Source of the DNA: Paragordius varius
Lineage: Eukaryota > Animalia > Nematomorpha
Reading direction: 5' to 3'
Assembly: GCA_964247055.1 (NCBI GenBank)
Contig: OZ176050.1
Span: 14,136,001-14,200,000, forward strand
Length of the DNA stretch: 64,000 nt
Part shown: piece after piece, positions 9,401-51,513 of the stretch
Layout: the number at the start of each line of letters is the position of its first letter
How positions within the stretch are numbered: position 1 is the first letter of the stretch
Position numbers and translations under genes: made by a program
The notes under the pieces: generated by a model
The model's input: only the letters and a program-made list of their open reading frames with translations
What the model was told of the DNA's origin: nothing
Database searches by the model: none

Positions 9401-12400
9401 AAATCAATATAATACCCTCCCCCCTCCTTCCCAAATAAACGTTTAATATTTTACGCATGATTTTCACGATAATACTTTTGAGTATTTTTGTTTAGGGGCG
9501 ATCGTAAAAAGGATAATAGGTAAATGTTTTTTTATATGATTCAATTTTGGACAAATGGGCTATTTAATAGTTTTATTATTTCTTACTTGGGACATTTTTT
9601 TGTTGGGACATTATAGACTATTAAATAGTTTTTTGATAAAACTTTGTAATGCTTTAAAAGCAAGCCATTGTAGCGATTGAAAATTTCTAAAACGAGAGTA
9701 AATTCCACGTGTGGTGGATATTTTAAGATTACTAATCCATTTTATAATTGACATTAAAAGGCCATATGCATATTTTTATATTTGACCTAACACTATATAT
9801 GCTAAAATTTAATATTTCAGCTCAATTGTGAATAAAGTACAGTTTTGAAAGTTATTTAATTAAATTTAATTATCAAACATTGTTGTCATTTATTTGATAA
9901 AAAGGCAGATATTTTTCACAGTTTTTATGTCTAGAGTCTGAAAAACAGCACTAAAACAGGATTTAAAAGAACAGTTAACATGAAAATCAAAGTTTCAAGT
10001 TTTTGCTTGTAAATTATAAGAAACCTGTTCAAGTTAATTTAAATTTTCTCGCCATAAAATATATTTATTTGCCTGTTGCTTGAGCGAATTAAAAAGATTA
10101 ACGCAAAATGGGCAAAAAAGTTTGAGATGCTGTCACAATTTTACATATCAAAATGTATAATGCTCCTAAAAGTTTAAAGTAGCATATTTTAAATTGGCTT
10201 AATAGCTTACCTAAACACTTTTCACATTAATACAAATCGTACTGATATATATAACTTTCCAAAAGGCAATAGAGTGTTATTAAATTTATGATGTTGTATA
10301 TTGTAATTGTTATTTTTAAGCAAAATAATATATAGGAGTATTATCAGAGCTCCCTTTCTAAATGTTAATACATATAATGCGTTGCTGGATATTTGCTATT
10401 TGTTATATTAATAATAGGCTGAATTTTTTTCAATTATTGTATATAGATGATAATTTAACAAAAATATCTTGGCGAAAATTAACTTGTAAACAAACACAGA
10501 ACTAAGACTGATTAAATATACTATATTTTTATTTCAGTGTTTTTGCCCCTATCCTACAATATCAGCTTTATTCACACATTAACGTTTAAGGTAATATTTA
10601 TAATCTCTTTTTTAAATTATAACTGTTAGCCAAACTATGATTTTAGACTGACTATTTTCATTTATAAATATATCCTCCATACTTTAGTTTTGTGTTGAAA
10701 ACCTATTAGATCCATTATTCTATTATCTAACTTGCATGCTTTAACATAAAAAACCATCTAATATAGCCAAAGAGTAATTTATAAAATAAAAAGGCAGAAA
10801 TTTTTGCTATTTTTGTGACTTCTAGACTCTGAAATTGGAACAAACCCGAAACATGATTTAAAAAAACAGCTGATATTTTAATCAAAAAATAAATAGTTTT
10901 TGCTGGTAAAATATAGCATGAAACCTGTTTAAAGCTAATTATTTAGACATTTTCCTTATAATATATTAGCGATATACAAAAATAATAGAAAAAATAGTTT
11001 GAAACATAGAACTAATTAATTAAACTATTTTTTTTCAGAGTTTGTGCTCTTAGTATAGTAAACTTACAATACCAACTTTATTCACAAAATTACGTTTTAG
11101 GTAATAATTATCATTTCCTATTTAAATTATAACTGTAAGCCAACTATGATTTTAGACTGACTTATTTTCATTTAAAAATAAGTCCTCCATAATTTAGTTT
11201 TGTGCCGAACACCTTATTTCTTTTGATCCATTATTTTATTATCTCACCATGCCTTAACATAAAAAACAGCATCTAATATACCCAAAGGGTATTTTATGCG
11301 TCTCTTTTGCGAACAAAATATGGTCTTATACATTTAACATAATCTGAGTTTCGACATGTATAGATTATTTATATACTCAATATATTTTAATTACTTTTTT
11401 CCCATACTTTTGGCATGTTCATCTAAATATTTTAGTCAAATAATAATCCTTATATAATTGCTTGTTTTAACCCTAGAGCCTGTTTATGGGTAAATTCAGG
11501 AGTAAATTTTACCCTATGTTGTCTGTGCCAGATTTGGGTTTTTTTTAGGTTTATTTATTCAGTTGAAGTCAAAATCAATATTATAATATTAGTCTTAAAA
11601 TACTCACCCCCCTCCTTCCCAAATAAAAGTTTAATATTTTACGCATGATTTTCACGATAATACTTTTGAATATTCTTGTTTAGGGATCGTAAAGAGGATA
11701 ATAGGTAAATATTTTTTTATAAAATTCAATTTTGGACAAATGGGCTATTTATTACAGTTTTATTATTTCTTACTTGGGACATTTTTTTGTTGGAACATTA
11801 TAGACTATTAAATAGATTTTTATGATAAAACTTTTTAATGCTTCAAAAGCAAGCCATTGTAGCGATTGAAAATTTCTAAAACGAGATTAAATTTCACGTA
11901 TGGCGGATATTTTAAGATTACTAATCCATTTTATAATGCATATTAAAAGACCATGTGCTGACTTAACACTATATATGCTAATATTTAATATTTCAGCTCA
12001 ATTTTGTGAATAACATTGTTGTCATTTATTTGATAAAAAGTCAGATGAAAATTAAAGTTTCAAGTTTTTGCTGGTAAAATATATCCTGAAACCTGTTTAA
12101 GTTAATTATTTTAATTTTCTCGCCATAATATACATTTATTTGCCTTTGTGTATGAGCAAATTACAAAGATTAAGGCAAAATGGGCAAAGTATAATGCTTC
12201 TAAAAGATTAAAGCAGCATATTTTAAATTCGACTGAATAGCTAAACTACTTTACATTAATACAAATCGCAATGATATATAAACTATTCCAAAAAGTATTT
12301 GAGTGTTATAAAATTTATGATGTTGTATATTGTTATTCTTATTTTTAAGCAAAATAATATATAGGAGTTTAATTATCAGAGCTCTTTTTCTATATGTTAA

Positions 12401-15400
12401 AAAATATAATGCGTTGCTGGATATTTGCTATTTCTTAAAAAGGCCGAATTTTTTCATTAATCGTATATGGATGATAATTTAACAAAAATATCATCTTCGG
12501 CGAAAATTAACTTGTAAACAAACATACTAAAACTAATTAACCTTTTTTTCAGTGTTTTTGCTCTTATAGTATATCTATCAGCTTTATTCACAAATTTACG
12601 TTTCAGGTAATAATTATCAACTTTTTAAATCATAAGTTGTTAGCCAACTATGATTTTAGACTGACTTTAAGTCCTCCATACTTTAGTTTTGTGCCAAACA
12701 ACTATTAGATACATTATATTATCTAACTTGCATGCTTTAATATAAAAAATCCATCTAACATAGCCAAAGATGTCACTTCTGTAGTCTGAAATTGGAACAA
12801 CATCGAAACATGATTTAAACGCTGATATTATAACCAAAATATAACAAGTTTTTGCTGATAAATATAGCTCAAACCTGTTTAAAATTAATTATATACACAT
12901 TTTCGCCATAATATACAAGCGATATTAAAAAAAATAAAAGCGACAAAAAAGGCGACAAATAAGTTTGAGATCTTAAGCTTAAATACTTTTTAAGATATTA
13001 ATACAAATCATTTTGATGTATGAATATTCCAAAAGGTAATGGAATGTTAATAAATTTTTGATGTTGTAAATTGTAAAGCACAATATATATTTCAATTTTA
13101 AGAGCACTCTTCTCAAATTGTAAACTTCCGTAAATGCTAAAAGATAGTAAAATAATGCTTCTATATATTTGCTATTTGTTATTGGAAATTCGGAGAGTTA
13201 TGATTATATAAATTGATGATTCAACAAAAATTACATATATCATCGGCAAAAATTAACTTGTAAACAAAAATAGAATTAAATTTTTTTTATTTGTGTTTAT
13301 GCCCCTATAGTATACCTACAATATCATTATTCACAAATACACGTTTCAGGTAATAATTATCATCTCTTTTTTAAATTATAACTGTTAGCCAACTATGATA
13401 TTAGACTGACTATTTTCATTTAAAAATAACTCCTCCATCATTTAGTTTTGTACTGAACACCTAATTTCTTTTCATACATTATTTTACTTACTAACTTGCA
13501 TGCTTTAACATAAAAAAACTATGTATTATACCCAAAGGGTAATTTTAAAAAAATTGTAATGCCTTAAAAGCCATTGTAGCGATTGAAGATGGATAAAACT
13601 ATAGAAAATTTGACTTGTCGTGAATATTTTAAGATTGCTTATCCATTTTATTATTCATTTGAAAAGGAGCCAAATGCATATTTTTTGAATATGACTTCAT
13701 ATTATATATGCTTTATCACACATAAAATTTACCATTTCAATACTTTTCATTTTGTCCAAGTTCTTCTGAGGTTTTATATCCCAGAGCTTAATTTTGTAAA
13801 TAAACTACAGTTTTAAAAGTTTTTTATTTGAATATCAAACATAGTTCACATTTATCAATAAAAAGGCAGATTTACAGTTTTGTGATTTCTATAGTCTGAA
13901 ATCGGAACAGCACCCAACACGATTTAAAGAACGGCTGATATTAAAATCAAAATATAACAAGTTTTTGCTGGTAAAATATAGCCTGAAACCTGTTTAAAGT
14001 TAATTATTTACATTTTCTCGCCATAATATACAAGCGATATAAAAAATAGAAAAAGATGACGAAAAAAAGTTTGAGATGCTGAATTTTCACAATTTTACAT
14101 ATTATAAATTGTATAATGCGCCTAAATTAAATTAGCATTTTTAAAATTCCGCTTATATCTTAAATACTTTTTAAGATATTACTAATCGCTCTGGTATATT
14201 ATTCCAAAAGTTAATAGAGTGTTATTATATTAATGATGTTGTATTTGTTAATTTTAAGCAAAATAATATATAAAAGCTTAATTTTAAGAGCTCTCTATCT
14301 CTCTCTCTTAATGTTAAGAGAAATAATGCGTTAGACATTTGTAATTTGTTATATAAAGATAGGCTGAATTTTTATCAATTATAATGTAAATTGATGATTT
14401 AACAAAAGTTACATATATTATCGGCAAAAATTAATTAAACAAACATGACCTAAAACTAATATATTAAACTATTTTTTTATTTCAGTGTTTTTGCTCCGAT
14501 AGTAAACATACAATACCAACTTTATTCGCAAATTTACGTTCTTTTTTAATAATAGTTACTATTATTTTAGACTGACTATTTTTATTTATAAATTTATCCA
14601 CCATACTTTAGTTTTGTGCTAAACGCTTATTTGATCATTATTTTATTATCTAACTTGCTTGCTTTAACATAAAAAACCCATCTAATATAGCCAAAGAGTA
14701 ATAGATAAAAAGGCAGATATTTTTTACAGTTTTTGTGACTTCTAGCGTTTGAAATCGAAACAGCACCGAAACACGATATAAAAAACCCCTGATATTAAAA
14801 TCAAACTGAAACCTGTTTAAAGTTAATTATTTACACATTCTCGCCATAATATACAAGCGATATAAAAAATAATAGAAAAAAATGGCGACAAAAAAGTTTG
14901 AGATGAGGATTTTTTTTACAAATTTACATTAAAAAAAAGTTGTATAATGCGCCTAAAATATTAAAACAACATATTTTGTATTCGATTTAATAGCTTGAAT
15001 ACTTTTCAAGATATTAATACACATTCTGGTATATGAAACTAAAAGTTAATGGAGGGTTAATAAATTTATGATGTTGTAAATTGTTATTTTTAAGCAAAAT
15101 ATATATTTTAATTTAAGAACGCTTCTTCTCAAATTCTAAACTTCCGTAAATATTAAAAGATAGTAAAATAATGGGTATTTTACTATATATTTGCTATTTA
15201 TTGTTAGAAATTCGCAGAGTTTATAAATTGATGATTCAACAAAAATTATATCGTCGGCGAAAATTAACTTGTAAACAAACATCACTAAAACTAATTAATT
15301 AAACTATTTTATTTCAGTGTTTTTGCTCTTATAGTATACCTACAATACCAGTTATTCACAAATACACGTTTCTGGTAATAATTATCATCTCTTTTTTAAT

Positions 15401-15830
15401 TCTAACTGTTAGCCAACTATGATTTTAGACTGTCTATTTTTATTGAAAAATTAGTCCTCCATAATTTAGTTTTGTACTCACTAATTTCTTTTCGATCCAT
15501 TATTTTACTATCTAACTTACATGTTAACATAAAAAACCATATAATATAGTCAAAGGTTAATTTTATTTTGTCTTTGTGAACAAAATCTATTTATTTTATA
15601 TAATCAAATACATTTAACTTAAACTGATCGACATAGCTAGATTATTATACTTAATATATTTTAATTATTTCACATACTTTTGGCATGTGGCTAAATATTT
15701 TGATCAAATTATAATCCATACATATAATTGCTCGTTTCCACAAGTGAGCGGGTTTCTGGGTAGATACTAACTGATTTAACCTCACCCTATAACGCATGTG
15801 CCAAATTTGGGTTTGTCGTGATTACAATTT
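6417..15830. repeat. Degenerate tandem array, about 8 units; full unit ~1.7 kb, later units 0.7-1.3 kb with internal deletions
   Basis: Recurring markers: GAACAGCACCGAAACACGA-like (~6555, 8298, 9945, 10838, 12795, 13905, 14760); AACTTGTAAAC (~7140, 8823, 10482, 12510, 13256, 15267); GCCATTGTAGC (~7948, 9664, 11853, 13570); GAGCCTGTTTAT (~7610, 9301, 11478). Confidence 0.9.
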
Positions 15831-16965
15831 ATAGTGAACCCCCCCGCCCCCTCCCCTTTTCCCCAAAATAAAATTAAGCGTGTAAAGATAATCTATTTTT
15901 TTATTCAAGGATAACACAATTATTTTATTTTTGATAAATTCGTATACTTTAAATTTTATTCCATAATTAAAAGTAACAATCCCGTTTATATAGGTTAAAT
16001 GGAATATATGATTGTGTAATATTTTGTTCATTTATTATTACATTTTAAAAAATTATAAATGTTTGACCAGAAATATTAACTTATGGGAAAATTATTAAAT
16101 ATTTATTTTACTAATGGGTTTTAGGACAAAATAATTATGGTTCTAATGTAAAAAAAGTAAATAATAATAGCAAAAAAAACAAAATGCTCCAAGCAAAAAA
16201 TTTACGACATATGACCACAAATCGATCATTTTTTCATTCTATGATCTCATCATTGAATATATTTTGTAAAATAATTCGCGAGCAAAAAGCTCGTTTTCAT
16301 TAAAACGATAAAAGATATAAAACAAAAATGTTGTTGCATTCCTAAAAAAAGTATTAATTTTATTGTGCGGTAATTTTATACGGCCCTGCCTAACATCAAT
16401 TTTTTTATTGCGTCAGTTTCCTCTCACTTTATACGTTGCGTTACTTTAAACTAAGTTATTTGAACATAAAAACCAATTACACTCTATTTCCCAATGAAAT
16501 GCTTAAAGTTAATCTTCTTTGTTAATTAAATGATGCGATAAATATTTTTTTTTGATTTTTTTGAACGAGTTTTTATAGGGGCCATTATAATATTTTAAAA
16601 CATATTTTTTTAATGATTTTTTAACAATTTTGGATAACATTTAAAACTTTTAAAGCTGCAATTAAGTAAATGTATACCACCATATAAAATAGTTGGGCTC
16701 CAAAAACGTTTTTTAATTTTAATAGCAAATATGTCTGATTTCCGCCATTTCGTATAATTTAAACAGGGTTGTCCAATACAAATGACTCCGCAAGCCGCAT
16801 TTTAACCCTAAAAACGGCATGCGGCATTCGGAATATATATAAGGATTTAATTCCATAATATTCCAACATAAAACTATAAAATGCAAACACAAAACAACTT
16901 TTTTTATAAGCTGATTTACAATTTAGTTACTAATTTATATAATCTTTATTAGAATATAAACCGGT

Positions 16966-17038
16966 ATGCAATTATTTAAATACTTGGCTATATGCTTCTG
17001 TGGAACTATCCTCCTGTGCTTGATCGAATATGTGAAAG
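16966..17038 (+). CDS. Secreted-protein gene A, exon 1 (signal peptide MQLFKYLAICFCGTILLCLIEYVK-G)
   Basis: ATG, basic N-region, hydrophobic core, V-x-G cleavage context, phase-1 donor AAAG|GTAGAT. Paralogous exon with the same donor at 46425-46497. Confidence 0.75.
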
Positions 17039-18201
17039 GTAGATATAATTTTTTTTATGTGCAGTAGAAACAAACAAAATAAATAAATTTTTATATGAAG
17101 ACCGATATAATGGTAATGGTAACTTAAGCTTACGAGTCGTTTTAAACATTATTTAAAACTTTTACCGTCAATACTCAAGATTTTGATATCCTAAAAATAG
17201 AGATTAAGCGGTAAGATTGTATATCAAAATCAATTATTCTTCCAAATTAGTCATCGGTTTATTGATATAAATTATCAATTTTTATTAAGTTTTGCGTATT
17301 TTAAGTTGAACCCGCATAAAAGCAGAAATTGCGCGATAGAATTATGCTTATTATTTGTTAAAAATCTATTATTTGCCGCGCATATCTTATTTTTAAATTA
17401 AATTAGAGAATTTAAGGCGTTTTGCATCAAATGATTTGTATAAAAATAATTATACATAACAACACCTTTATGTGAATATAGTAAAAATTGGATTGAACAT
17501 CCATAGTTTTAACATATTTTTATAACCTTAATATTGCAAAGTTTAAAAAAAGATTGTAATTAGTTTAAAAAAATGGTTGTCTAATTTTTTGTCTTTCTCA
17601 ATAGAATGCATATTGTACTTATATATACAGATAAATGTATTAATATTCTTATAATTTTAAAACTTGCACATAATATATGCAGGGCTTAGAATTAGAAACG
17701 CAGAAAAAAACCAGGTTTCTTGCATTTTAGTAGGAATGATTTCGTTGGATTAAAACAAACCCGATTCCGGTTCTGCATGTCAAATAAATGTTACCACATT
17801 TCATTTAAAAAATTAAATTTATTGTGTAAATTATTTTATAAAAATCCATATGAATGAGCTAAAAAATTGGCTCATTCAATGTAACTTATGAGGGAAAATA
17901 TATTAAAGGGAGGTGGCCATTTTGAAATTTTTTAGAAAACAAATTTTACCAAATATGGATAACATCGCTCGGCTTTATTTGTTTGTTTTATTGAAAAGTA
18001 TTATTTAAGATTAATAGATAACAATCTTTTTTCACATGTATAAATATGATGAGGGCGAATGTAACTAAACTAAAAGCCAAATAAAAAAACTATGATAGTA
18101 AATGTATAACATTAGAGCATGCAACAGTTTGACTTTACTCAGGGAATCAAATTTTTTAAAAGTTAAGGCACAATAACTAATTTATTTTACTATCACACAT
18201 C

Positions 18202-21879: not shown

Positions 21880-22029
21880 GTAATTGCCAAATAACGTATT
21901 ATGGGATCACATATTCAGTAACTAACAGTACGTATCCTATTGAGAGCAATGAAGTGATTACGCTAAACAATGATACAGCTCCTTGTACTGCAAAATTTTA
22001 TATAAAGCTTCACATAAATTGTACTTTGG
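21880..22029 (+). CDS. Secreted-protein gene A, candidate exon 2 (G-NCQITYYGITYSVTNSTYPIESNEVITLNNDTAPCTAKFYIKLHINCTL)
   Basis: 150-nt phase 1-1 exon bounded by taatAG| and TTGG|GTAATT, no stops, less AT-rich than its flanks, 3 Cys and 3 N-glycosylation sequons. Joins exons 1 and 3 in frame. Confidence 0.65.
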
Positions 22030-24395
22030 GTAATTTATTTTATATGATATATATCATAACTAACTTAAAATTATCATACCTTTATATGTATATATATATT
22101 TGATGCCCGAATTTTATATAGTAACGAGGGCTATATTGTCAATTTCGGTAATTGGTTAAAAGGCATTTATTTATCTTTGAATTTATTTAACACTCGAATC
22201 AGGGGATAAAATATCCCAAACAATATTTAAATTTATTTATAAAATACTACTGAAAAAACGATTATTTAAATTTATGCTTCTATTCTAAAAAATTATATAA
22301 ATAAATCATAATATCTAATTAAAATTTAGTAATGGAGAGGTTTAGTATCAAACGACCACGACGCCATTATTATATTACAACATTTTCGCAAATATCGTGT
22401 TTTATTCTAACCTTAAAATTAAGTTATTTTTTTATCAAAATCACATTTAACGTTGATATAAACAGAAAAAGTGGTATATTTTGCATTATTTTTACATTTA
22501 GCCTATGCACACATGTTATGTTGGATAAATTTTTACCTTTGGGGTGTGCCTCTAAATAATTAATATAAGTATTTGCGAACAAAATTTTTTATTATTATAT
22601 TTCGGTTCGGTTATATCAGTGCAAACTTTTGCAAAGGTTTGAATTTATTCCATTTTTTTAAATATTAAATTAAGACAAGCTTGTGGTAACAACTACCCCA
22701 ATTCGAATAGAAGGATTAAAATGAATGCGTTGTATCCAAGTCTTGTGTTAAATATGATAAATAAACAGACGCCATTTCTACACAACTTCTCTTCTATATG
22801 TTATTAAATAAAATCCTAAATCATGTTAATTGTTTAGCCACTATATACACTAAAAAATTTAACAAAATAATTTTTATTTCATGAGATAGCTTATGATCAG
22901 CGTATTCATTTGCCGTTAAAATTTTTATTTGTTTAAGAACTAGTTTTTGAATAATTGAGAGAAATCGAAATCGGGGTAAAATGAAAATTAAGGATAATTA
23001 AGAGTAATTTAAAAAATGATAAAATTTGAGATATTATGGTTTATTATCATTTAGGATATATTTTCAATATAACATTAGACTAAAACGATATAATTAAGGT
23101 TTCTATAAAATTTCAGTTCTAAGATGGCGTTTTTCTCTTACCACATTTAAAATAAAAGACAAAAAAAACTTTCATACTATATTAAAATAATTTTAATTAA
23201 TTATTAATAGCAAACTCACTGATTTCAACATTCATATGTTTTCATTATCAGTAAAAACTTCTATATCGTGTTTTTTTTATTCCTTTTTTTGTCATCTGGT
23301 TATGAGTGTATAAAAAATTATACTGTTTTATTTTAAATCTTACAAGAGTGGAAGTTATAAATTAAATGCAAAATAATAGGATTTAAAAGTAGTGGAAAAT
23401 CTACCAACAATCCGTACATATCCCGGTATAAATATTATGTGTTACAATTTTATAACCAGATGACAAAAAAATGAAAAAATAAAAAACAATATTTTTTAGA
23501 TTTATTTATTGTTTTTTTACTGAATAAAATTAGAATGTTAAGATTTCAACATTAAAATTTTTTAAATTTGTAAGAAACTCAAATCCTAAAAAGAAGAACG
23601 TCATCTTTCTAATTGAAATGTCATATAAACCCTATATATATGATTTTATTTAGTGATACTCACGCGGCCCGCGGGCCGCATGCGGCCCTAAGAGTGCTTT
23701 AAAATTGCCCTATGACCAAATAGATACATAAATTATTTTTTTGAGGAATTTTTAAATAACATAAGCGAATTTTAGGGTATATAGCAATTTATTTTCTTTA
23801 TATTTAATTTTGGTAATTTTTATTTTTTACCTAATTTGAAATGTAGAAAAATTTTCCTAGATTAAAATGATTTCAAAATTTTGGCACACGTTGTTTCTGT
23901 TTCTGTATTTATTTTCTTTTATATTTTAATATTTTCATTGCTTCCTTTTAAAGCAAGCCTTTTATTCAAACCTGCATATTCTTTTCATTTTTTACATCAT
24001 TTTTTGATACTCATTTCCATAATTTCAAATCAACATCATTAAATTTCGTCCTGTTTTTTATACCATATTCTAATATTCCTATTTTTTTAAAAAAATTTAC
24101 ATAATAATTAAACATAAATTAAAAGGATGACATCAAAAACGTAATCCGATGAAATCGCTTTTTTAAAAAAGAATAGGAAGAAATTTTTTTTGTCGTTTTT
24201 AAAAAATGTTGTAACCTGCCTTATATATAGGACCACATAATTATAAAAAATACAATATGGAAAGACATCTCAATATGCACTCTTTGTGAGATTTTGCAAC
24301 GAAAACATAATCAACGAGTATTTATTTTTACCAATGAATAATACCACGAAAAGAAATAACTTCCTAAAAATAATTAGCATTTTTTTAGATAAATG

Positions 24396-27300
24396 TAAGG
24401 TGACCAGACGTCCCGCTTTTTCACACTTTGTCCCGCCTCCCGCTGCGTTTTTGAAATGTCCCGCTTTTTCACGATTATATAAAAAAAGATTTTTTTAAAT
24501 ACATTTAAGTTTTTTATATAAAATTTATTTTTTTTTATCCGTTTAAATTTATTATCATTAGTTATCTTTAAAATCTGTATCAATTTTAAATTAAAGTTTT
24601 TTATTTTTAAATTAAAAATATTTATTTTTTTCAAATTTATATCATATGATTATACACTTTGCTTCCTAATCCTACTGCCAACATTATCACAAAGACAAAT
24701 TAATATCACAACGGTAGCTTATACCTTTACTCCAGAAAATTAAGGTAATATAATATTTTTTATATTAATACTAGCGTAAATCTCGTGCTGCTACGCAGCC
24801 AGAATAAGTCCTTCAGACTTCTGGGGGGGAGGGCTATTTGAAATAAGGGACAATAAAATGATCCACATATGTGGATTATTTCGAAACATTATTTAATAGA
24901 TATGATTTTATAGGAATTTTTAAACGGAGCATTCATACTAATTAATATATTGTTTAATAGGGCGAAAAATAGATTTAAAAAATTATTTTTGTGGACTTTG
25001 TTTTTTGAAAAAAATGGCATTTTACGAAGGGAGCGGAAAAGAGGGATTAAATCAAAAGCGAGACGACTATGTTCGGCGCAATCGAAAATAAGTAAATTGA
25101 ATGATACTTTCTCCAGAAAATTGTCTCTTCAAAGACACGATTTTTGTGGATTTCTGTTTTCAGAAAAACCGTTTTTCAGACGGGGTGGGCCCGAACTGGG
25201 GGCCTATTTCAAAAAAAGGGCGAAGCTATTGTGGGACATTTATTAATGATTATATTTATTCGATATTTGGATTTGATTGGGTTCACCGGTTTTCCGGAAA
25301 CAGATCACAAAGTTACATGAGGAATCAGTTTGCGGGTAGCTCCCTACCCAGCAGCTACCATCAAAGAACCGCTTGACTAAAATTTTTGCCTTTTAACAGA
25401 GAATACGTGGAATCCATATTTTTTTACGGTCTCATACCTAGGGCGAAAAATAGATTTAAAAAATTATTTTTGTGGACTTTGTTTTTTAAAAAAATTGCAT
25501 TTTACGGGGGGAGCGGGTAAAAAGAGGGCCTTAATCAAAAAAAGCGAGCTTACTATGTTCGGCGCAATCGAAAATAAGTAAACAAAAATCATATTTGAAA
25601 TTGAATGGTCCAACACGTTCTCCAGAAAATTGTCTCAAAGACACGATTTTGTCGACTTGTTTTAAAAAAAACCGTTTTTCACACGGGGTAGGCCCGAACT
25701 GGGGGCCTATTTCAAAAAAAGGGCGAAGCTATTGTTGGGGCATTCATTAATGATTATATTTTTTCGAACTTTGGATTTGAATGGGTCTACCGGTTTTCCG
25801 GTACCAGATCACAAAGCCAGCATTTTCCATTTTTATAAATATATAGATTAGTTTAAAATATGAGTACAAAAAGAGGTTGTAAATTTAACGATGATTTAAT
25901 GAAAGAATTTCCTTTTATCAAAAAAACGAAGAATGAATCATTTGTTAATACTTTCTGTTAGGGGTTCACTCTACCACATGGCGGTAAGCATAATATTACA
26001 AAGCATATGGAAATACAGAAACATAAAAGATGTTTAGATATGGTGGCATCATCTCACAAAATGAGGGATTTTTATCGTAAAACCGCTTTTGGAGAGGAAG
26101 AAAAGAATTTGGCACTAGCCCAAGGCGTTTCATCTTTTCACGCGTTAATTACAATCATTCCATTAGATCTATGGATTGTACCTCACATGTTATTCGTGCC
26201 CGTACAAAGGCTGAAGGCATTGTATGCATTGTCCTTTCGCCACATGCATTTTCTGAATACAAAAAGATTTCCTGAAAATTTTCATATCGCCATACTCTGA
26301 TGTATCAAATCAGGAAACAAAAATATTTCCCACGTTAATAAAATATTTTGTCCAGAAACCGGAGTAAAATTAAAATTTTAAGTTTTATTTCTCTACCCGG
26401 TGCGAATTCCGACATAATTTTACTTCAATAATGAATATTCTAGGAAAAAATATTTTAAAAGACAAAATCATCGCATATTGCTGTACACTAATACGAACTT
26501 CGGTGGAAAAGCAAGGAGGGAAACAAAAAGAAATTTTCAGTAATTAACAGATAATCTTAATCCATTATTGACGTTGGGTGTGTAGCGCTTATAACACACA
26601 ACGCTATTCAAACAGCTGCTGATTTGTTACCCCTAGATGTGGAAAATGTAGTTGTTTATGTATATTCCTATTTTTATATACACGGTACGCGTTGAAACGC
26701 TTAAAAAATTCTGTGGAAATGCAGAAGTTCAATATTAAAAAAATGCTTGGATATTGTAAAACTCGTTGGTTTGCTCTTCTGCCAGCTATCGAAGGAATTT
26801 TAAAAAATGATACTTTAAAATCCTATTTTTTTTATCACAGGACAAATGTCCTACAACTTTGGAAAAGTTTTTTGAAAGTGATTCTTCAATATGGTTAGAA
26901 TTCCTACATAATCAAGCTTCTCTCTTTCAAAATGTTATTAAATTGATAGAAAGTGACAAAACTTCGGCAAACGAAGTAGCCAATGAAGTTAGTAACCTAA
27001 AATTCCAATGTAGAAAGGTTATAAAATAATTTTATACCAGTAACCAATCGCAATATTATAAATAATTTAGAAAAACAAGGCTTAATAAATCGCCAAGATA
27101 TCTTGTTCCATTAAAAATGTTTTATACAAACTGTAAAGATTATTGGAAGACTGGACGGTGCAATTTAATGAAATTGATCATTTTTATTGGATAACATTAA
27201 TGGAACCAACGCTGCTACTGAGCGCGTTTTTTCCACAGTAAATCAGATGTGGACATCGGAAAAATCAAATTTAAATGTTGAGACTTTAAAGGCCGTGTTA

Positions 27301-27567
27301 TCTGTCAAATATAATTTGACAAATTCTTGTGAAGACTTCTACAATATTTTATAAAATGATGACAATCTGCTAATACGCATTCACTCAAATAAAAAATATA
27401 CCAATGATTTAAATATTTTTTTATATATAATGTATTTGTGTTAAAAATAAATAAATACTACAATAAATTTTTTGTATAAAAATTTTTGGTTGCCCCACCT
27501 CATAACCCCCCCCCCCCCATTTCTCAGATTTGTCCCGCTTTTTCCTTCAAAAAATCTGGTCACCTTA
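24396..27567 (+). mobile_element. hAT (Blackjack-like) transposon with decayed transposase at ~25860-27400
   Basis: TIR TAAGGTGACCAGA / TCTGGTCACCTTA; perfect 8-bp TSD GATAAATG (24388-24395, 27568-27575); BED-finger-like start MSTKRGCKFNDDLMKEFPF..HGGKHNITKH, LGYCKTRWFALLPA, hATC GTNAATERVFS..WTSEKSNLNVETLK. Confidence 0.92.
24771..25847 (-). mobile_element. Non-autonomous Helitron with a tandemly duplicated ~490-bp internal unit
   Basis: Minus strand A|TCTATATATTTATAAAAATGG at 25847 ... GCGTAGCAGCACGAGATTTACGCTAG|T at 24771. Internal duplication 24950-25320 / 25440-25815. Confidence 0.8.
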
Positions 27568-28886
27568 GATAAATGGCATATCTATGAAAAAATTGGTTTT
27601 GTGGACAGATGGGTGTCCCTCTATCATTGGAATAAAAAAGATTTATTTCCCTTTTGAAAAACAAATATAATTTGCAAAATATTTTAACCCTTTACTGGTT
27701 TATCCATCAGCAACTTGGTTTCGCGTATAAAAGATGAATCACTCAATCCAGTAATTAAAACGGTTGTGGATATAGTTAATCACATCCGTGGCCAAGAATT
27801 CAACGGCCGTATATTTAACAACCATCTGAAATCACAGTGAATTTGACCATTTGTACACCGCTGTGCGATGGCTTAGCCTTACCAAAGTATTAAATAGATT
27901 TTTTGTTTTAAGGCATGAAATTCTATTATTTATAAATTATAACAGAAGGTTTGACGAGTAAATTAATAGTGACAAACAGTGGATTTTATTAGCCTACCTT
28001 TGCGACATTACCGCGGCGGTTATCATTTAACATTTTTATTTAATGAGATAAAATTTAGAATTAAGAAATATTAAAAATTGCTTAAAACTCGTTGAAAATC
28101 CATGGCATATGGATATATCCAATATTAAGCAACTTGAGCATTTCGGTTTTAACAGGCGCATATCATTGAAGAATTCATAGATCTCAAAAATGATTTCAGG
28201 AGGCTATATTCAAGGGAAATTGTGGGGAAGAAAGATATGTAGAGTTTTGGCAAGATGTGCCAAATAAATGTGAGAATTTAAGAAAATGTGCTCCACTTAT
28301 CTTAACTGTTTTTCCTTAAACTTACACGTATGGGCGGCATATTTAAAAATGAAGTATGTCAAGAATACATAAGGAAATCACTTAATCGATGATCATATAC
28401 CACGTATTAAGATTGGCCTGTCATGAGGCGAAACCAAATTCGTCAAAAATTATTGGTTAACATCAAAATAAATGTTAATAAAATATTTTAATTTTTTAAA
28501 TGGTGCGAAACGAGTTTTTAGCTGATTTACATGCGATCCGCAAAAAATTAATTATGCTGATGAGTATTATGCATATGTGTCAAATAGCTATGGAACATTT
28601 GCCATTGGTTCATGGCCCTCAAAAAATAATATATTTTATTTGGCTTGTCAAATTTTTTTGGTGAGTACCACTGATTTTATTTATATATTGAAAATATCAA
28701 AATGATAAATACCATTATATCTCAACTTTTATCATTTTGATCTATCCTTAATTTCACTTTTTTGCCTGATTTCGATTTTCTCTCAATATTTCAAAAACTA
28801 AATCGTAAACAAATAATAATTCGCAAATGAATACTCTGGTCATAAGCTATCTCATGAAAAAAAAGTAACCTCTTTTTTTGCACACA

Positions 28887-28927: not shown

Positions 28928-29098
28928 AATTTCCAATATAAGCTCTCGAAACCGGAAACATACTCAACATATTACAAACCTATTGTACACATAAGAATTA
29001 CAAATATCAAAATGACATCTTAAATAAAATTAGTTTATATAAACAGTGTTATGATAAGGAAGTATATTTGTATTTTATTTAACTCGATAATATTTCAG

Positions 29099-29283
29099 AG
29101 ATTACGCGTGAAGCCGATTCGTACATTATAAAAAACAAGACAGTAACCCATCATCCTGCGCATCCAGCCGGGATAACTGTTGGAACGGCTCATGATCATC
29201 CCTATATGCCAACTTATAATGTAACATTAAAAGATATCAACACTGCTGTAACTTTAACGGTATATAAATTGCCTCTTGTCTAG
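29099..29283 (+). CDS. Secreted-protein gene A, exon 3 (E-ITREADSYIIKNKTVTHHPAHPAGITVGTAHDHPYMPTYNVTLKDINTAVTLT; then VYKLPLV* if unspliced, or a 24-nt intron at 29260-29283)
   Basis: Acceptor tatttcAG|, phase 1, open frame; indel-free paralog over 53 codons at 51343-51501. Confidence 0.8.
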
Positions 29284-29364: not shown

Positions 29365-31046
29365 AGGTAGTAAAAACCATACTTTTAAACCAGAGTCACC
29401 AAAAATTTTTTAAGGAACCAAAAAAATATTTTTAATTAATAGCCTTTCGACACATTTGCAGATATTTATACTGAAAATAAGCACTTCAGGGCCATAAATA
29501 AGCACTTTTAAGGCCATGTGGCCCGTGGGCCGGGGTTTAAGTATCACTGCTCTTAACCTTAATACATTTCTACATAAACTATATAATTTTAATATATTAT
29601 ACAAATGGATTTGTACCAACAACATATCTCATAGACCAAAAACGATGATTGTTTAAGCAAATCAAGTTTTTCTTAATAGAAATCTATAATCAATACTTAT
29701 TTCGTTTTGTCCTTATAATCTATTTTTACTACTCTTAAGAAGCTTGTTGATAAGCAACTCATAAATTATTGTTTTCCGTTAAGCAGAATTTTAAGTTATT
29801 GTATTATAAACTTAGTCGGATCGTAATAGATAACACATTTTTTTTAGGAATAAGCTAATAATCCACACATTTAATATATGGGCTCTCCAAAAATCTATTT
29901 TTTGATACATTCTGCACATTTGGAATGTGTTCTTACTCGGAGTTTATCAATATATATTTGCATATCTACGATTAAATAGCGACGCTAATCGGTTTCATTA
30001 AAAAACTTTAACTGTAAATTTAAAATTTGATTCTGTTTATTAATAAAACGCCTTAATACAAGACATTCAAGCGTATCGAAATTATACCTTCTGGCGCAAC
30101 AATAGAGACAAGTTGTATCAAATAGTATTTAACTTAGAACCAGACATTATAATTAAGAGTTAATATCTTTTTTAGCAATTTGAGATTGAATTTTATCTGT
30201 TATATTTGTCATACCACAGTCCCTCGGCCCTTTAAAGGCTTTTAGAACCATAATATAGAAAATTTATAGCTTAATTTTTTACAGTTAAAAGGGGAAAAAT
30301 ATCTTAATAACTAACATTATTTTTTAAATTTTATTCTAATTAGACTACTAAATGCACTGGAAAATTTACTCTGTACTACTTCCCGTAAGTTATCATATCT
30401 CAATCGATAATAATTGTTATATTATATATTATCTGATATTTTAGATATGGCATTAGTTAAATTAAGCAAAGAATACGGGGCTTATATCAAGAGAACACAA
30501 TATTACATTATATTAAACATAAATAAATAAAAATTATTATTGAAATCACCATATCTATATAATTGACACAATTTATGTTATATTTAAAATTTGTCCGATA
30601 GTGCTCGTAATGAATAAATAAAATTTTAGGAAAACAAAAAAAAATTTTTTCACCAAAATAATTTCTCATAATTTCCGATAATGGCAATGAACTAAAGCCA
30701 AAAAATGAAAAAATAAATTTTTAGACTTTTGGATATAAAATTGTAATGCCCATGTATTTTTTAAAAGGTGGCGTACCAAAAATTTTGATCTAAAAATGTA
30801 GCCCAGTGAGCCATTTGTGTTGAACCCTCTAATCTATCTGTTTCTATCGAATTAATAACTACTAGTTGGTTTTGTTGGACATGTTACAGTGTGTTTCGCG
30901 TATAGAGTGTTGTACTTGTCAAACCCTTTAACCCATTTTATGGGGAAGAAATTTAATATTATACGCTTATAGCTTTCTAAGTTTTGAGAATGACATTGCT
31001 GTTTTTATCGTTACTAATAAAGAAGGCGGTGGTTAAGGCATGTGCC

Positions 31047-31779: not shown

Positions 31780-34490
31780 AAATTCAGACAGCTGTTTCAA
31801 ATAAAATTAACTCCAGCAATTTGTCTTTATGTATTGGTACATAATTTACGCACTAACATAATCGAAGTTATTATAAAAAATGGGAAACTTGACATCAGTG
31901 TAATAGGGATAGCAGAATCCCACATTTCATTAAACAGTCACATATAATATGAAAATCACATCCTATTATACTCAGTATACGATACCCTTAAGCGAAACGG
32001 AGTGTATAGTGACCATATCACTTGCCAACTCATCTGAAATTCACCATATACACAGTGCTTATAATATCACGATTGAACTCCTCTCCACAACCAATAACGA
32101 TATTCCAAATCTATGCCCCTATTAACTCTAACAACGAAGACTCCAAACAATTTTACGAAACCCCCAGCTCAGCTATGAAGAAAGTTCCCCATAAAGACAT
32201 GATATTTGGATTGGGCAACTTTAACGCGATAGTAGGTAATGATAATACACACCAAATCACTGGTGGGAAAGGACTGAGAAGCCAAAAGATAAAGGCTACC
32301 GCCTCATAAAATTTTGCAGCGACATAAATTCTTCATCTCAACCTTTTTTCCAACAACCTAAGAGAAGGCTATACACATGGACCTCATCTTGCAAGAGGCA
32401 CACAAACCAAATCGACTTTATTATCGGTAAAATACAAATCTTCATTTATAAACGTAAACCTACACTTCCGACTCTTATTCTTATCATAAACTCCTTGTAG
32501 CTAAACTTAAAATTAAACTAGTACTCTCACGCAAACCAAAATTTCCTAAATTACTTTTTTCCGCGTTCCCCGAGTTTTCTCTGCTAATATAAAACAGATT
32601 CAAAACACTAGAAATTGACGATACTGAAAATCTTTAAACAATACAAAATATCACTAGAACCACAGCCAGAGAATGCATCCCTATCCAAAAATCCCATTAT
32701 AACAAAATTAAGCTATCACAAAAATGTTTAGATTTAGCGGACAAACGGTGCCAAGCAAAATGCATATTAATACGGCAGAGTACAAATCACCTAACGTAGA
32801 GTTCCAAAAAAGCGCCGGATGACAAAAAAGATCACTATAATCAGCTGTGCTCAAAATTAAAAAACGCTGCTAAATATAACAACAATTACTTTTCTGAAGT
32901 TGATCACATTGAACCACGTAACTCTGAAAGCTACAAAGGCCCAATGAGAAAGGAAGATGGAGATATCATTACAGACAAAAAAACACTGATGTAACAAAGA
33001 GAATTATATTATTAAAACTATACGGCACCAACCCATCAAACGCCGATAAAACAGTAATATCTATCAACATGACCCGCAAATCATCAAATAAGAAGTTGGG
33101 CGCTCAGCCGTTCCCCAAACAACAATCGGAGGCGTACAACGATATCCCAACCCAACTCTTTCGTTTTATCCCAATTCATATCCTAACTAATTTATTCAAA
33201 AAGATATTTGCTCACGCTTCATTCCCCCAAGATTGGTGCAAATCAATACTTTTCCCCATCCTAAAAAGATTCTAAATCATTTAACAACTACAGAACTAAA
33301 GCGCTAATCAACCAAGCCTCATTTTTCTCAAAATGATTCACCGTATCCAAAGTATGATTGAAGCCGAACTTTCTAACACCCAAGCGGAATTTAGAACCAA
33401 TCGCGCAAGCAGGGAGCTGGATATTTGAAAAACAAATCGAATTTCAGAAAAAAACCCATATCTGCTTTATTGATTTTTCAAAGGCCTTCGACAATGTGGA
33501 AAGCACCATCTCAGGTTGAAGTATCAGATCATATTATAAACATTGAATCCCTTTACTCCGATTCATCAACCATAAAAACCCCACACTGCATAAGTAATTG
33601 GATACGAATGAACAATGAGTTACGACAGGGATGCGTCCTCTCACCAACTCTTTTTAACGTTTGCATAGAAATTATATTAAAAAATATAGATAAAGCTAAT
33701 GGCATAAGCATCGCCGGCAATATCATATCACTTCATTATGCTGACGACACTGTACTGCTGTCAAAATCAGTGGACAACCTAAAAAATCTCTTGAAATATC
33801 AACTGTAAGCCAAATATTCGGTCTGATGATCAACTACAAAAAATCTAAAATTATGAATATAAACGCTCAAAATCATTACAACATTTTATCCTTTGACAAC
33901 CAAAAAACGAAGTAGTCTCCTAATACATTTATTGGCAGTCTTATCAATACGATTAACAACAGCACCCCGACATCAAAAGAAAAATAGGAATCGGGAAATC
34001 AAAAATGATGAAATATAAACTATGGTCCATGACATCAAACTTAAAACAAAAATCCGATTAGATAAATCCCTAATATTCCCTAGTATGCTATATGCGTCAA
34101 AAAGTTGGACAATTACAAAGGATGAGAAAAGTTATAACGCCTTCGAAATGTGGTGCTGGCGAAAGATATAACAAATCACCTGGAAACAAAATAAAGAACA
34201 CCGTAATCCTTGACAAAATAAATCCCGAGATAGACCCGATCGTACGTGCTTCAAAAGGAAATTATTATACTTTGGTCACATTATTAGAGCTAATGAATTG
34301 GTATTCCAACTAATGACAGGCAAGGTCAAAGGATCCAGGAAACGTGGGCGCTGCAAGATGCGCTGGATCAAAAAGCTAACCAAAGAAACCAATTTCTCTT
34401 AACAACAGCTAACAGCACTCGATTACAATTAAATAAACGGAGAAAAGATACCTTCGAAAAAGCGACAACGATCTTTGCTATAATAATAAT
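31780..34490 (+). mobile_element. RTE-clade (BovB-like) LINE, near full length, decayed
   Basis: APE: QIYAPINS..GNFNAIVG..QPKRRLYTWTS..NQIDFII; RT: LRQGCVLSPTLFN..HYADDTVLL; C-terminus AFEMWCWRK..LYFGHIIR..RGRCKMRW; short (ATA)n tail ~34480. Confidence 0.9.
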
Positions 34491-46424: not shown

Positions 46425-46497
46425 ATGCAATTATTCAATCACTTGGCTTTCTGCTTCTGTGGAGCTTTCCTCCTGTTCCTGATCGAATAGGCAGAAG
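46425..46497 (+). pseudogene. Gene B exon 1 (MQLFNHLAFCFCGAFLLFLIE*AE-G), nonsense at codon 22
   Basis: Gap-free alignment to 16966-17038; TAT>TAG at 46488-46490; donor GAAG|GTAGAT retained. Confidence 0.75.
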
Positions 46498-47526
46498 GTA
46501 GATATATTTATTTACTATGTGCAGTAGAAACAAAAAACCAAATAAAAAAATATTTTTATCTGAAGACCGATATGGTAAGCTTTATACGAGTCATTTTAAG
46601 CTTATATTAAACTTGTACCGTAAATTGCCAGGATTTTAATATCCAAAATATAAAATAGAGATTAAGTGGTAAGATTTGTATATCGAAATTAATTATTTTT
46701 TAAAATAAGGCATCTGTTTTTTATTATTATAATGCAGTTTTAATCACGCATGTAATGCGAAACGCCTGTTTCAATTTACAAATAAAATATGCGCTGAAAA
46801 TAATTGATTTAAACATTAGCATGTGTTAAAATTTAAAGCGCAATCTAATGCTAATAAATTATATGTAAGAAAATATAAGGTTAAATAATTATGGTGTATT
46901 TTGGGAAAATTATTTGTCTTTATTTTACGTTTTGTCCGTAGAATTTCATTTCTTAACATATAAATGTATCAATATTCTCATAATGCTTTTGGTTTTTGAC
47001 CTTGCACATCATTTAAGCAAGGCTTAGACTGGAACATGAAATGAACTAGATTTCTTGGGTTTTAGGAATCGATTCCGTTGGAACAAACCTAATTCCGGTT
47101 CCACCTTTAAAATAAGTGTTGCCAGATTTCATTTTTAAAAATAAAATTTGTGCCTAAATTATTTTATCAAAGGCCATGTGAATAAGCTAAAACATTAGCG
47201 CATTCATATGGGCTATGACTTATGAGGAAAAACATGTTTAAGAAATGAGATTTTTGACGCAATTTTGAAAAGTATTATATTATTTATAGATGTCAATCTT
47301 TTTTTTGAATAATCATGAAGGCGAAAAATTCTTTCGAAAATCACGAGCAAAATAAATAACGGAATTATGAAAAAACACGAAAGTATAGAAAATGTGTAAC
47401 ATTAGAGCATGCACCAGAAAAAAGCATGACTTTACTAAGGGATTCAAATTTTTTTAAAAATGTTAAGGCATAATAACTTTAATTTATTTTACTATAACAA
47501 ATTTCAAATATGTTTTAATACATATA

Positions 47527-48962
47527 TACCATTTTTCATGCAAAAACATCATTTTTTCAAGCAAACGCACCATTTTTTCAAGCAAACGCAACATTTTTTC
47601 AAGCAAAGGCAACAATTTTTCAAGCAAATGCAACATTTTTTCAAGCAAAGACAACATTTTTTCAAGCAAAAACAACACTTTTTTATAATATTACAAAGAA
47701 TTATTATTTATTGTTAATTATAAATTATTTATTAAATTTTAAGTAAAAATTTATTTTTAGCGTTGAATTATGATTTTTATCGTTTTATCATCAATATTTG
47801 ATGGTAAAATTGATTTTCAAATATTTTGAATCTGCCCATAAATTGCCTTATTTATTTATATTAATTATATTTTTCTTTTACAATTTTGGTTTCGCCTAAT
47901 CAAATTATTTAATTTGCACTTCAAGAGTGTCTTTGAAAGTTTAAAGTTGTCCTTCACTTCAAGTTGGTCCTTTGACTTTTTTGTTTTGTTTTTAACTTTT
48001 ATCAATTAAATCGAAAATAATTTATCTATTTTATTGTTTTTAACCTATTTTCTATTATTTAACATAAATTTTAAATCGATATCATCTTTTAATCTTTGAG
48101 AAACCGTATATCTATATTAATTTCTTAAAATAATTTTAGATATTTATAACACGAAAAAAATATATGAGTTTTCTGGGTTATTAAAAAATTTTCATTAAAA
48201 ACATTAAAAGTTAATAATTTTGTTCAATTAAAAAAATATTTTGAAACAAAAAAGTGGTTTTTCAATAAAAATTTTTATTTTTAAATGGATAAATATATAA
48301 TAAATAAAGAAAATTAGGTTAATAAATAATAATATATATTAAAAAATAAATGCAAAAATTAGGGTAAAACAAAATTTATATATTTTAAGGACCAACTTAA
48401 AGAGTTCAAGGACCAACTGGAAATGTTCAAGGACCAACTTGAAGGGTTCAAGGACACTGTTGAAGTGCAAATTAAATAATTTGATTAGGCGAAACCAAAA
48501 TTGTAAAAGAAAAATATAATTAATATAAATAAATAAGGCAATTTATGGGCAAATTCAAAATATTTGAAAATCAATTTTACCATCAAATATTGATGATAAA
48601 ACGATAAAAATCATAATTCAACGCTAAAAATAAATTACATTTACTTAAAATTTAATAAATAATTTATAATTAACAATAAATAATAATTCTTTGTAATATT
48701 ATAAAAAAGTGTTTTTGCTTGAAAAAATGTTGTCTTTGGTTGAAAAAATGTTGCGTTTGGATGAAAAAATGTTGCGTTTGTTTGAAAAAATGTTGCGTTT
48801 GCTTGAAAAAATGTTGCGTTTGCTTGAAAAAATGTTGTCTTTGCTTGAAAAAATGTTGCATTTGCTTGAAAAATTGTTGCCTTTGCTTGAAAAAATGTTG
48901 CGTTTGTTTGAAAAAATGGTGCGTTAGCTTGAAAAAATGATGTTTTTGCATGAAAAATGGTA
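47527..48962. mobile_element. Compound foldback: type-b outer arms (21-bp CAACATTTTTTCAAGCAAACG arrays) around a type-a MITE core (47912-48472)
   Basis: TACCATTTTTCATGC...GCATGAAAAATGGTA; near-perfect inverted arms 47527-47920 / 48465-48962. Confidence 0.88.
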
Positions 48963-49765
48963 TATATATATTAAAATTTAAATATTATTTTATTAATATC
49001 TTTCCTGCCTGGCCTATGCATAATTATTATTGCAAGCAAAAGCAAGCCTAAATTCTAGAGTAAATTTTGAAATATACATTGCTCCAAGAATAAAAAATAT
49101 GTTCTAGCCTATCATGGGTTGAGAAAAAGAATAGATAAGTATTGCATTAAATTTGGATAAACATTTATATATTACAGAAATTTGAAGAGAAAGAATAGTC
49201 AAAGGTGATTGAACTTGAATTACATTTTAAAAGTTCATTTATAACATCGCAAAGCATTATACAGTTTCCCTCATGCTTTTATATAGTTAAATACACTTCA
49301 ACATCATTTAAAATTTTTATGCTATAAGGTTGTATTAAAAAACTTACATTTTTGCGTTAGTATTAAGAAAACCTACTTATTTTAGAAGGAAAATTATTTT
49401 TGTAATAGTTTGTTATAAAATTAATATTGTTAGAAAAAATTTTATGAACCAATTTTTATGGTATTTTGGAGCATGGTGAAAAGGCTAAAAAACATTTTAA
49501 CATCATAAGTACATTCCATATTATTTAAATTATAATCCCCTTTTAAATCTATGTTTTCTTTAATTTGTCTATAATTTTTATGCTCCGAATTACCATAAAA
49601 TATTTTTACAAAATTTTACTAAAATTAAATTCCAAGTATGTATTCCTAAAAAGAAATTTTTTGATATAATCTATTATATATAAAAGATTCTCAAAATCTC
49701 GGCTTTTTTGCGTTTGTTTTAAAAAAGTTACTGATAATACTTTTTGGAGAGTTTAGCTTTAAAAA

Positions 49766-50466: not shown

Positions 50467-51040
50467 TTCTAAAATATTCCATTTACCATAATGTTCGAAA
50501 TTTTTATGTGTTTTCTTATTGATGTGAACCATTTGCTACAAGTAATAATTTGTCTAATATCAATTGTAAAACTCCAAAAACACCACAAAAATTTTGCTAA
50601 ATTTATCTGCAATTTAAGCTAAAACCGAAAGGTAAAAATTTCGTCAACGTGACATGTGTCAAATTGTAAAATTGAAAAATTATACAAATTAAACCGCTTT
50701 TTCTATTTCTATCAATGTTAGATGTAATTTATATAAAAAATGAGCTCTAGTTTTACTCTTAAAATTAAATAAAGACTATATTTTGCAAAAATTTTGTAAA
50801 ATAAAAATGGCGTCGAAGTAGTTTGAGATGGAGCTTTTTTTTAAAACAAAATTTTATCAAAATATTTTGGCATAGATAGAAGCATACATTTAAATTGGGA
50901 CCGTTTCCTTCAGTAGTTTTTTAAAAATATTAATTTAAATTTAGTCTGGGGTATTTAGATACCCCAATTTGAATTGAAGTGTTAACTTATAATTACAATT
51001 TAAATTAAATTGAATCTATGTATCCTAAAAAAATTTTATA

Positions 51041-51340: not shown

Positions 51341-51513
51341 AGATTACATGTGGAGCCAATTCGTACATTATTAAAGACAAGGATGTAACCAGTGATCCTA
51401 AGGATCCAGCCGGGATAACTGTTAAAACGGTTCCAGGCAATCCCAATATGCCAACTTATGTGGTAACATAACAAGCTATCGACTCTGCTGTAACTTTAAC
51501 GGTTTTTATATAA
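51341..51513 (+). pseudogene. Gene B exon 3 homolog (ITCGANSYIIKDKDVTSDPKDPAGITVKTVPGNPNMPTYVVT*QAIDSAVTLT...)
   Basis: Acceptor ttttAG|; gap-free to 29099-29259; TTA>TAA at 51469-51471. Confidence 0.78.

Follow-up and report, generated by a model that had tools for sequence, protein, structure and literature searches.

A putatively secreted orphan gene with a histidine-bearing exon and a dead tandem copy in the horsehair worm Paragordius varius

In Paragordius varius, positions 29101-29259 of the 64,000-nucleotide stretch of DNA that was analysed (the window; contig OZ176050.1, 14,136,001 to 14,200,000 of the forward strand) form the conserved body of the third exon of a gene, here called gene A. 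This exon probably belongs to an intact orphan gene for a secreted-like, variable binding protein in which histidines were gained directionally. The similar exon of a tandem duplicate 22 kb downstream, copy B, is part of a dead gene. The skew towards replacement differences between the two exons is, taken alone, within chance, and the gain of five histidines on the lineage of A is unlikely to have arisen by chance. In this family, residues are replaced about as fast as neutral sites while the reading frames are protected, and diversifying or directional selection on the gene family is plausible.

Gene A, its dead duplicate and their relatives

As listed in Table 1, gene A is an intact three-exon gene, and its protein is roughly 130 amino acids long, with five N-glycosylation sequons (NST, NDT and NCT lie in exon 2), three conserved Cys residues and strand-like sequence. 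Exon 1 aligns with exon 1 of copy B and of a third copy, C, exon 2 aligns with that of C without gaps across 147 nt, and exon 3 truly starts two bases before the compared stretches in both A and B, in phase 1 and behind an AG acceptor. The N-terminus reads M-Q-L-F-K followed by ~15 hydrophobic residues, with V-K-G where exons 1 and 2 meet, and judged by eye it is a putative signal peptide. No fourth exon was found downstream: the similarity between A and C stops at ~29584, and the downstream frames in B and C are short chance frames, none of which is conserved. The ATG, the hydrophobic core, the AG/GT sites and the phase-1/phase-1 junctions are conserved in A and C, and again in two more distant paralogs, D and E, which have an equivalent signal-like start.

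Between A and C, no indels were found in 378 coding bases, whereas the rate in 2036 aligned non-coding bases of the same pair predicts 7.8 (P=4e-4), and when this expectation is halved, because exons hold fewer simple runs, P is still about 0.02. Neither gene contains a stop, and neutral simulation predicts about 1 stop per 32 substitutions (P about 0.06). With neither an indel nor a stop in these 378 bases, the frames of A and C are to all appearances held open by selection, and gene A is best described as a live orphan gene. Sampled words of the locus were absent from four runs guessed to be RNA, which are tiny (1-30 million letters); two of them, X4 and X5, gave nothing when compared with the locus directly, and none of the sequencing runs that contain the stretch is on record as RNA.

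A second, heterozygous allele of gene A (Table 1) is present at about half depth in DNA run X1 and also in X3, which carries the same two alleles. Its two substitutions give the residues of B and C, and its 3-base deletion is in frame; intron indels are 1-2 bases long. In the DNA runs, no variant contig spans the histidine region 29149-29199, an indication that the alleles are alike there. In the intron upstream, at 28971-29044, a DNA run under the assembly's species label contains a very divergent heterozygous haplotype at about half depth, whose 75 bases carry 9 substitutions as well as two deletions of one base each.

Table 1. Features of gene A, its copies and paralogs, and repeats; positions refer to the window, except those with the contig prefix C1, C2 or C9
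Feature	Position	Strand	Remarks
Gene A exon 1	16966..17038	+	ATG, 24 codons + 1 base; donor G/GTAGAT, phase 1
Gene A exon 2	21880..22029	+	49 full codons, phase 1 at both ends
Gene A exon 3	29099..29283	+	last coding exon; stop TAG 29281-29283
Gene A second allele, heterozygous	29234..29245	+	29234 A>C (codon 45), 29239 A>G (codon 47), 3-base deletion 29243
Insertion in A intron 2, absent from C	23652..28672	.	gap in A-C collinearity
hAT remnant in A intron 2 (Dimer_Tnp_hAT)	27178-27351	+	E=0.0018, below Pfam cut-off
MITE-like dispersed short repeat	29436..29560	.	shared 3' flank, same place in A, B and C
Reverse-transcriptase fragment (RVT_1)	33425-33805	+	E=1.7e-12, downstream of gene A
Copy B exon 1 remnant	46425..46497	+	in-frame TAG, codon 22 (46488-46490)
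Copy B deletion junction	50613..50615	+	about 1.3 kb, carrying exon 2 in copy C, missing
Copy B exon 3 remnant	51341..51513	+	in-frame TAA, codon 43 (51469-51471)
Gene D	C1:14239596-14245977	minus	intact distant paralog; loci L043, L055 for D/E
Gene E	C1:14283763-14286867	minus	intact distant paralog; loci L043, L055 for D/E
Exon-2-like frame	C2:14525302-14525457	+	G-Q-C-x-V-T-L-N-G-T ... C-x11-C-T-M, same acceptor context
Exon-2-like frame	C2:14540791-14540937	-	motif and acceptor context as in C2:14525302-14525457
Exon-2-like frame	C2:15031377-15031526	-	motif and acceptor context as in C2:14525302-14525457
Exon-2-like frame	C9:5023907-5024065	-	motif and acceptor context as in C2:14525302-14525457
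Exon-2-like frame	C9:5012101-5012247	+	motif and acceptor context as in C2:14525302-14525457

Copy B, described in the original prediction as a paralog with one nonsense codon, is not a working gene, as there are stops in its exons 1 and 3 and its exon 2 is missing. The alignment blocks between B and C jump from C 15968 to 17289, and no exon 2 for copy B was found in protein or profile searches of the genome. The introns and flanks of B are 79-86% identical to those of C over several kb. With these three lesions, and with its intron and flank homology kept, copy B can be classified as an unprocessed (duplicated) pseudogene. A micro-intron masking its stop was ruled out, since there is no GT...AG of suitable length and frame. 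Copy B being dead, the A-B comparison is thus one of a live exon with a dead exon.

A whole-genome DNA search revealed copy C, an intact full-length third copy 368 kb downstream on the same contig, and protein searches of the genome gave no other close copies beyond A, B and C. Genome profile searches placed D and E between A/B and C, on the opposite strand and within 400 kb. Both share the three-exon build, the phases, the open frames, the signal-like exon 1 and the three Cys residues at about 30% identity, and the homology of D is reflected in hhalign matches for exon 3 (E=7.8e-7) and exon 2 (E=0.0038). There are 4-5 more exon-2-like copies on two other contigs, so that nine exon-2 copies are known in all, and the three Cys residues of exon 2 are invariant across 7 of the copies. 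The gene family of A can thus be characterised, from its sequences, as clustered, divergent and subject to gene conversion.

Searches for relatives elsewhere gave little. No Pfam family matched any exon of A, C, D and F at E values up to 10, and a HAMP_2 match to exon 3 of E (E=0.14) is below the cut-off and was dismissed as a chance match. A feature search of the ESM Atlas with exon 3 gave no usable match, and an exhaustive search of 1.84 billion representative proteins with an exon-3 profile HMM found no true relative. Its only matches were five repeat proteins, with bacterial Ig-like (Big_2 and HYR-like) repeats, that sum weak P-x-G-I-T-V copies. Bacterial Ig-like repeats were rejected as homologs, since their E values (5.8e-13 and weaker) are the sum of 5-9 weak copies; single stretches of these repeats reach E=3e-4 to 0.02 against exon 3 in a two-sequence comparison. 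Membership of the Pfam family Big_2 was rejected as well, as no exon matches its profile and the similarity is that of a motif summed over repeats. AlphaFold2, run on exon 3 alone with 3 rows, gave an unusable model (pLDDT 44). The family of gene A is apparently unannotated and without relatives outside this genome.

The window is AT-rich (25-30% GC) and full of transposon remnants. The MITE-like repeat behind exon 3 has about 37 further genomic matches (query ~347-470) with 71-91% identity and a very high word depth, and holds the GC-rich palindrome GGCCCGTGGGCC. This repeat is older than the A/B/C duplications. A transposon-borne origin of the exon itself was ruled out, as the dispersed part is confined to the repeat and the exon has three close copies. 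Long tandem or nested direct repeats with 66-86% identity and a unit spacing of about 1.7-2.2 kb were seen by self-comparison at 6417-15814, and parts of this block recur upstream of B and C. Intron 1 of B contains two arrays of short tandem units, at 47460-47717 and 48670-48951, that are inverted to each other (96% identity, 47513-47683 versus 48806-48976) and that give rise to long spurious frames with FFKQ repeats.

Substitutions, histidines and gene conversion

The codon count in the original prediction proved exact: of the 53 gap-free codons (29101-29259 versus 51343-51501), 30 are identical, 20 carry replacements, 2 are synonymous and 1 is nonsense, the latter being codon 43 in B. The multi-base replacements ACA/GAT and AAT/GTG were found in the alignment as described. 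The homology between A and B extends from the acceptor to about 340 bases beyond the exon, with 79% identity over 536 columns, and the view was upheld that duplicated genes for a small, secreted-looking and sequon-rich protein share this exon by homology. The exons differ at 32 bases, of which 21-24 fall on the lineage of A and 8 on that of B. Sorted by codon position, A has 21 unique sites (11/7/3) and C has 19 (4/5/10), and B has 8.

How many synonymous changes are expected depends on the mutation spectrum, for which we used some 5,200 non-coding sites of the alignments (10,402 bases over both rows). In this local spectrum, the ts/tv ratio is 0.93 and G/C sites mutate about twice as fast as A/T sites. 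In simulations of 32 neutral substitutions, 4.7-4.9 codons on average were synonymous, 20-21 were replacements and about 1 was nonsense, against which the observed 2/20/1 is not exceptional (P=0.11-0.13 for 2 or fewer synonymous codons). The neutral yardstick of 3:1 that had been assumed is too low, since the expectation is about 4.2:1 per codon, and the ratio of 20:2:1 falls within chance.

The NG86 omega of exon 3 was 2.1 for A-B, 1.16 for A-C and 0.81 for B-C, that of exon 2 was 0.77 for A-C, and exon 1 gave 0.26-0.55. A maximum-likelihood codon model with three taxa (A, B and C), written for this analysis, put the omega of the mature protein at 1.00 (p=0.99 against 1) and that of exon 3 at 1.26 (p=0.54). 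On the branch leading to A, the maximum-likelihood omega of exon 3 was 2.79 (p=0.13) and that of exons 2 and 3 together 1.86 (p=0.31), and constraint on exon 1 was not significant either (omega 0.72, p=0.59). Parsimony assigned 15.5 replacement and 2.5 synonymous changes to the A branch (pN/pS 2.0, p=0.24), and 12 replacement and 7 synonymous changes to the C branch. The divergence of the A-B exon (32/159) was comparable to the 30.5 expected from the flanks after correction for composition (p=0.41), and the variable codons were not significantly clustered (p about 0.1 by estimate). Thus, none of the dN/dS-type tests on A, B and C, which cover 53-102 codons in three close sequences, was significant. 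The claim of diversifying selection for the A-B pair did not survive the addition of copy C, with which dN/dS is not significantly above 1. A striking count of replacement and synonymous codons over one pair of 53 codons is no evidence of selection when one partner is a pseudogene and the genome AT-biased; what proved informative here were copy C, the distant paralogs that served as outgroups, and the contrast between exons and introns.

The sequons NKT (codons 12-14) and NVT (codons 40-42) of A are absent in B, as had been noted, and also in C. There are five sequons in A and none in C, and D is sequon-rich. Since D has N-E-T where A has N-K-T, this asymmetry more likely reflects a loss in B and C than a gain in A, the direction of loss being not significant (P=0.085).

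The five His codons of exon 3, all CAT, begin at 29149, 29152, 29161, 29191 and 29197 (codons 17, 18, 21, 31 and 33). That they are specific to A was confirmed: the corresponding residues are S, D, D, P and N in B and S, D, A, P and N in C, and none of B, C, D and E has a His at these positions. Because the outgroups D and E lack His there, the histidines are gains in A. Four out of five gains needed A>C or G>C, the rarest classes of the local spectrum. When the A branch was simulated neutrally 3000 times, no run gained at least 5 His (mean 0.49), a test that is post hoc; for at least 5 gains of any residue, the same kind of simulation gave P=0.049, which is marginal. Over the mature protein there are 6 His in A and 0 in C (P=0.004-0.009).

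The contrast between exons and non-coding DNA, in which the non-coding divergence is a lower bound as it was taken from gapped alignments, varies between pairs. It is absent between A and B, as described above. The mature exons of A and C differ at 77 sites compared to 58.1 expected from non-coding DNA (p=0.005), and exon 3 of B and C at 30 compared to 21.7, a marginal excess (p=0.04). Between D and E, exon 2 differs at 46/156 sites (29.5%) versus 25/336 (7.4%) in the immediate flanks (p=6e-10), and versus 12.5% over 1636 bases of intron 2 (20.4 expected, p=6e-8). This applies to replacement sites (0.31 versus 0.125 in the intron, p=1e-6), and synonymous sites are raised too (pS 0.237 versus 0.125, p=0.04), without any indels in this exon. 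The same trend is seen between D and E in exon 1 (24% versus 16%) and in the initial third of exon 3 (21%, with one in-frame indel). In agreement with the original prediction, the rate of change in the mature part is no lower than that of neutral DNA.

Gene conversion, which had been named as a possible confounder, is active in the family. D and E are 98-100% identical along some 450 bases that begin midway through exon 3 and reach into the 3' flank, the signature of a recent gene conversion. Because synonymous divergence is raised in the exons as well, part of the exon-intron contrast may reflect conversion of the introns and not faster protein change. The flank divergences between A and C are mosaic (0.118-0.225). 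In exon 3, sites changed in C only cluster at codons 2-13 and 42-53 and those changed in A only at codons 14-47, a clustering that was not significant in a maximum chi-square permutation test (p=0.076).

Competing explanations

In the reading that we favour, the mature product of gene A, presumably secreted and glycosylated, would be a surface-variable extracellular binding protein. Its scaffold (the Cys residues, P-x-G-I-T and MPTY) would be held, and its loops would be free or driven to change, and so variable under relaxed or positive selection. Directional selection would have placed the five histidines in two loops of A, T-H-H-P-A-H-P and A-H-D-H-P, and such His-rich loops could conceivably mediate metal- or pH-dependent binding. 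Gene conversion would homogenise the introns and flanks among the copies, with the variable exons remaining different. That the family would constitute a parasitic worm's hypervariable repertoire of secreted surface-binding proteins, whose mature exons selection keeps different despite ongoing conversion, and in which A has recently neofunctionalised by five directional replacements that made a His-rich metal- or pH-switched site, seems rather improbable. Possible, if on the unlikely side, is relaxed constraint only, with a mature protein that drifts neutrally, a B that decays, introns that are homogenised and a His cluster that is coincidental. The maximum-likelihood omega of 1.00, the agreement of the A-B exon divergence with the flank expectation, the neutral simulation that yields 20:2:1 within chance, the raised synonymous sites in exons, the clear recent conversion tract in D-E and the mosaic A-C flanks are all in keeping with such drift. 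What drift does not readily account for is that exon 2 of D and E is an island, with about 7% divergence in both flanks, including the 50 bases upstream, versus 29.5% within, as an uninterrupted conversion tract would have taken in the exon too. Nor is there a donor for exon 2 of D or E in the assembly, and the five histidines were gained through the rarest classes of mutation.

A mosaic origin of the A-B pattern itself, through gene conversion, seems quite unlikely. Here, exon 3 of B would be A-like at its ends and C-like in the middle, and a swapped tract, not substitutions in place, would underlie the pattern. The separation of C-only from A-only sites along the codons fits such a swap, as do the short private branch of B (8 exon and 14 flank sites, compared to 21 and 26 in A and 19 and 22 in C) and the second allele of A with its B/C states at codons 45 and 47. 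However, the permutation test gave p=0.076, and a swap moves differences around and leaves the five private His of A unexplained. We consider it extremely unlikely that there is no working gene at all, and that all three copies either descend from a single gene already dead or are chance frames, decaying neutrally. An omega of about 1 in every exon, the lack of relatives in Pfam or among 1.84 billion proteins, and the absence of the sampled words from the four tiny runs guessed to be RNA would agree with this. Decay is difficult to reconcile with the absence of indels (P about 4e-4) and stops (P about 0.06) in A and C, which keep all splice sites and phases, and with D and E, which keep three exons, three Cys and open frames at about 30% identity. 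In addition, the three lesions of B show how true decay appears, and the deletion that is polymorphic in A keeps the frame, compared to intron indels of 1-2 bases. A live gene A with a directional gain of histidines thus remains our preferred reading.

Comparison with known systems

The family of gene A bears marks of fast-evolving secreted proteins, i.e. clustered duplicates, a pseudogene, exons that out-diverge introns, and gene conversion. In a horsehair worm, families of this kind may be candidates for a role in the interaction with the host, a little-known subject in this group. Snake venom phospholipase A2 isozymes and cone-snail conopeptides are encoded by multigene families with accelerated mature-peptide exons. 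As in these venom and toxin families, a signal peptide (here signal-like by eye) occupies its own exon, the Cys scaffold is conserved, and the genes form tandem clusters with pseudogenes; moreover, as between D and E, mature exons out-diverge introns (29.5% versus 7.4% for exon 2) and synonymous divergence is raised in the variable exon. The two differ in that there is no sequence or fold relation, that no test places omega in the family of gene A significantly above 1, that its signal exon is not clearly more conserved (exon 1 of D and E is 24% diverged), and that the gene A protein is larger than venom peptides and has glycosylation sequons.

Orphan secreted families of parasitic worms, such as the schistosome micro-exon genes, are similar in being restricted to one lineage, in having no Pfam domain, in their signal peptide (here again by eye), in their symmetric phase-1 exons, and in their clustered paralogs and rapid divergence. 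Gene A, however, has three ordinary-sized exons instead of chains of micro-exons, and nothing in it suggests variation by means of alternative splicing.

For the histidines, the nearest likeness is to histidine-rich glycoprotein, in which His-Pro motifs (GHHPH repeats) bind Zn and sense pH. The motifs T-H-H-P-A-H-P and A-H-D-H-P of gene A likewise lie beside N-glycosylation sequons, but gene A has no tandem repeat, no cystatin-like domains and no homology to this protein, and has five His only. Likeness to Big_2/HYR-like repeats consists of T-V-T, a Pro-rich linker, P-x-G-I-T-V and alternating strand-like residues. Taken together, the kinds closest to the gene A family would be venom-type multigene families and the secreted multigene families of parasites, a likeness that lies in behaviour and not in sequence.
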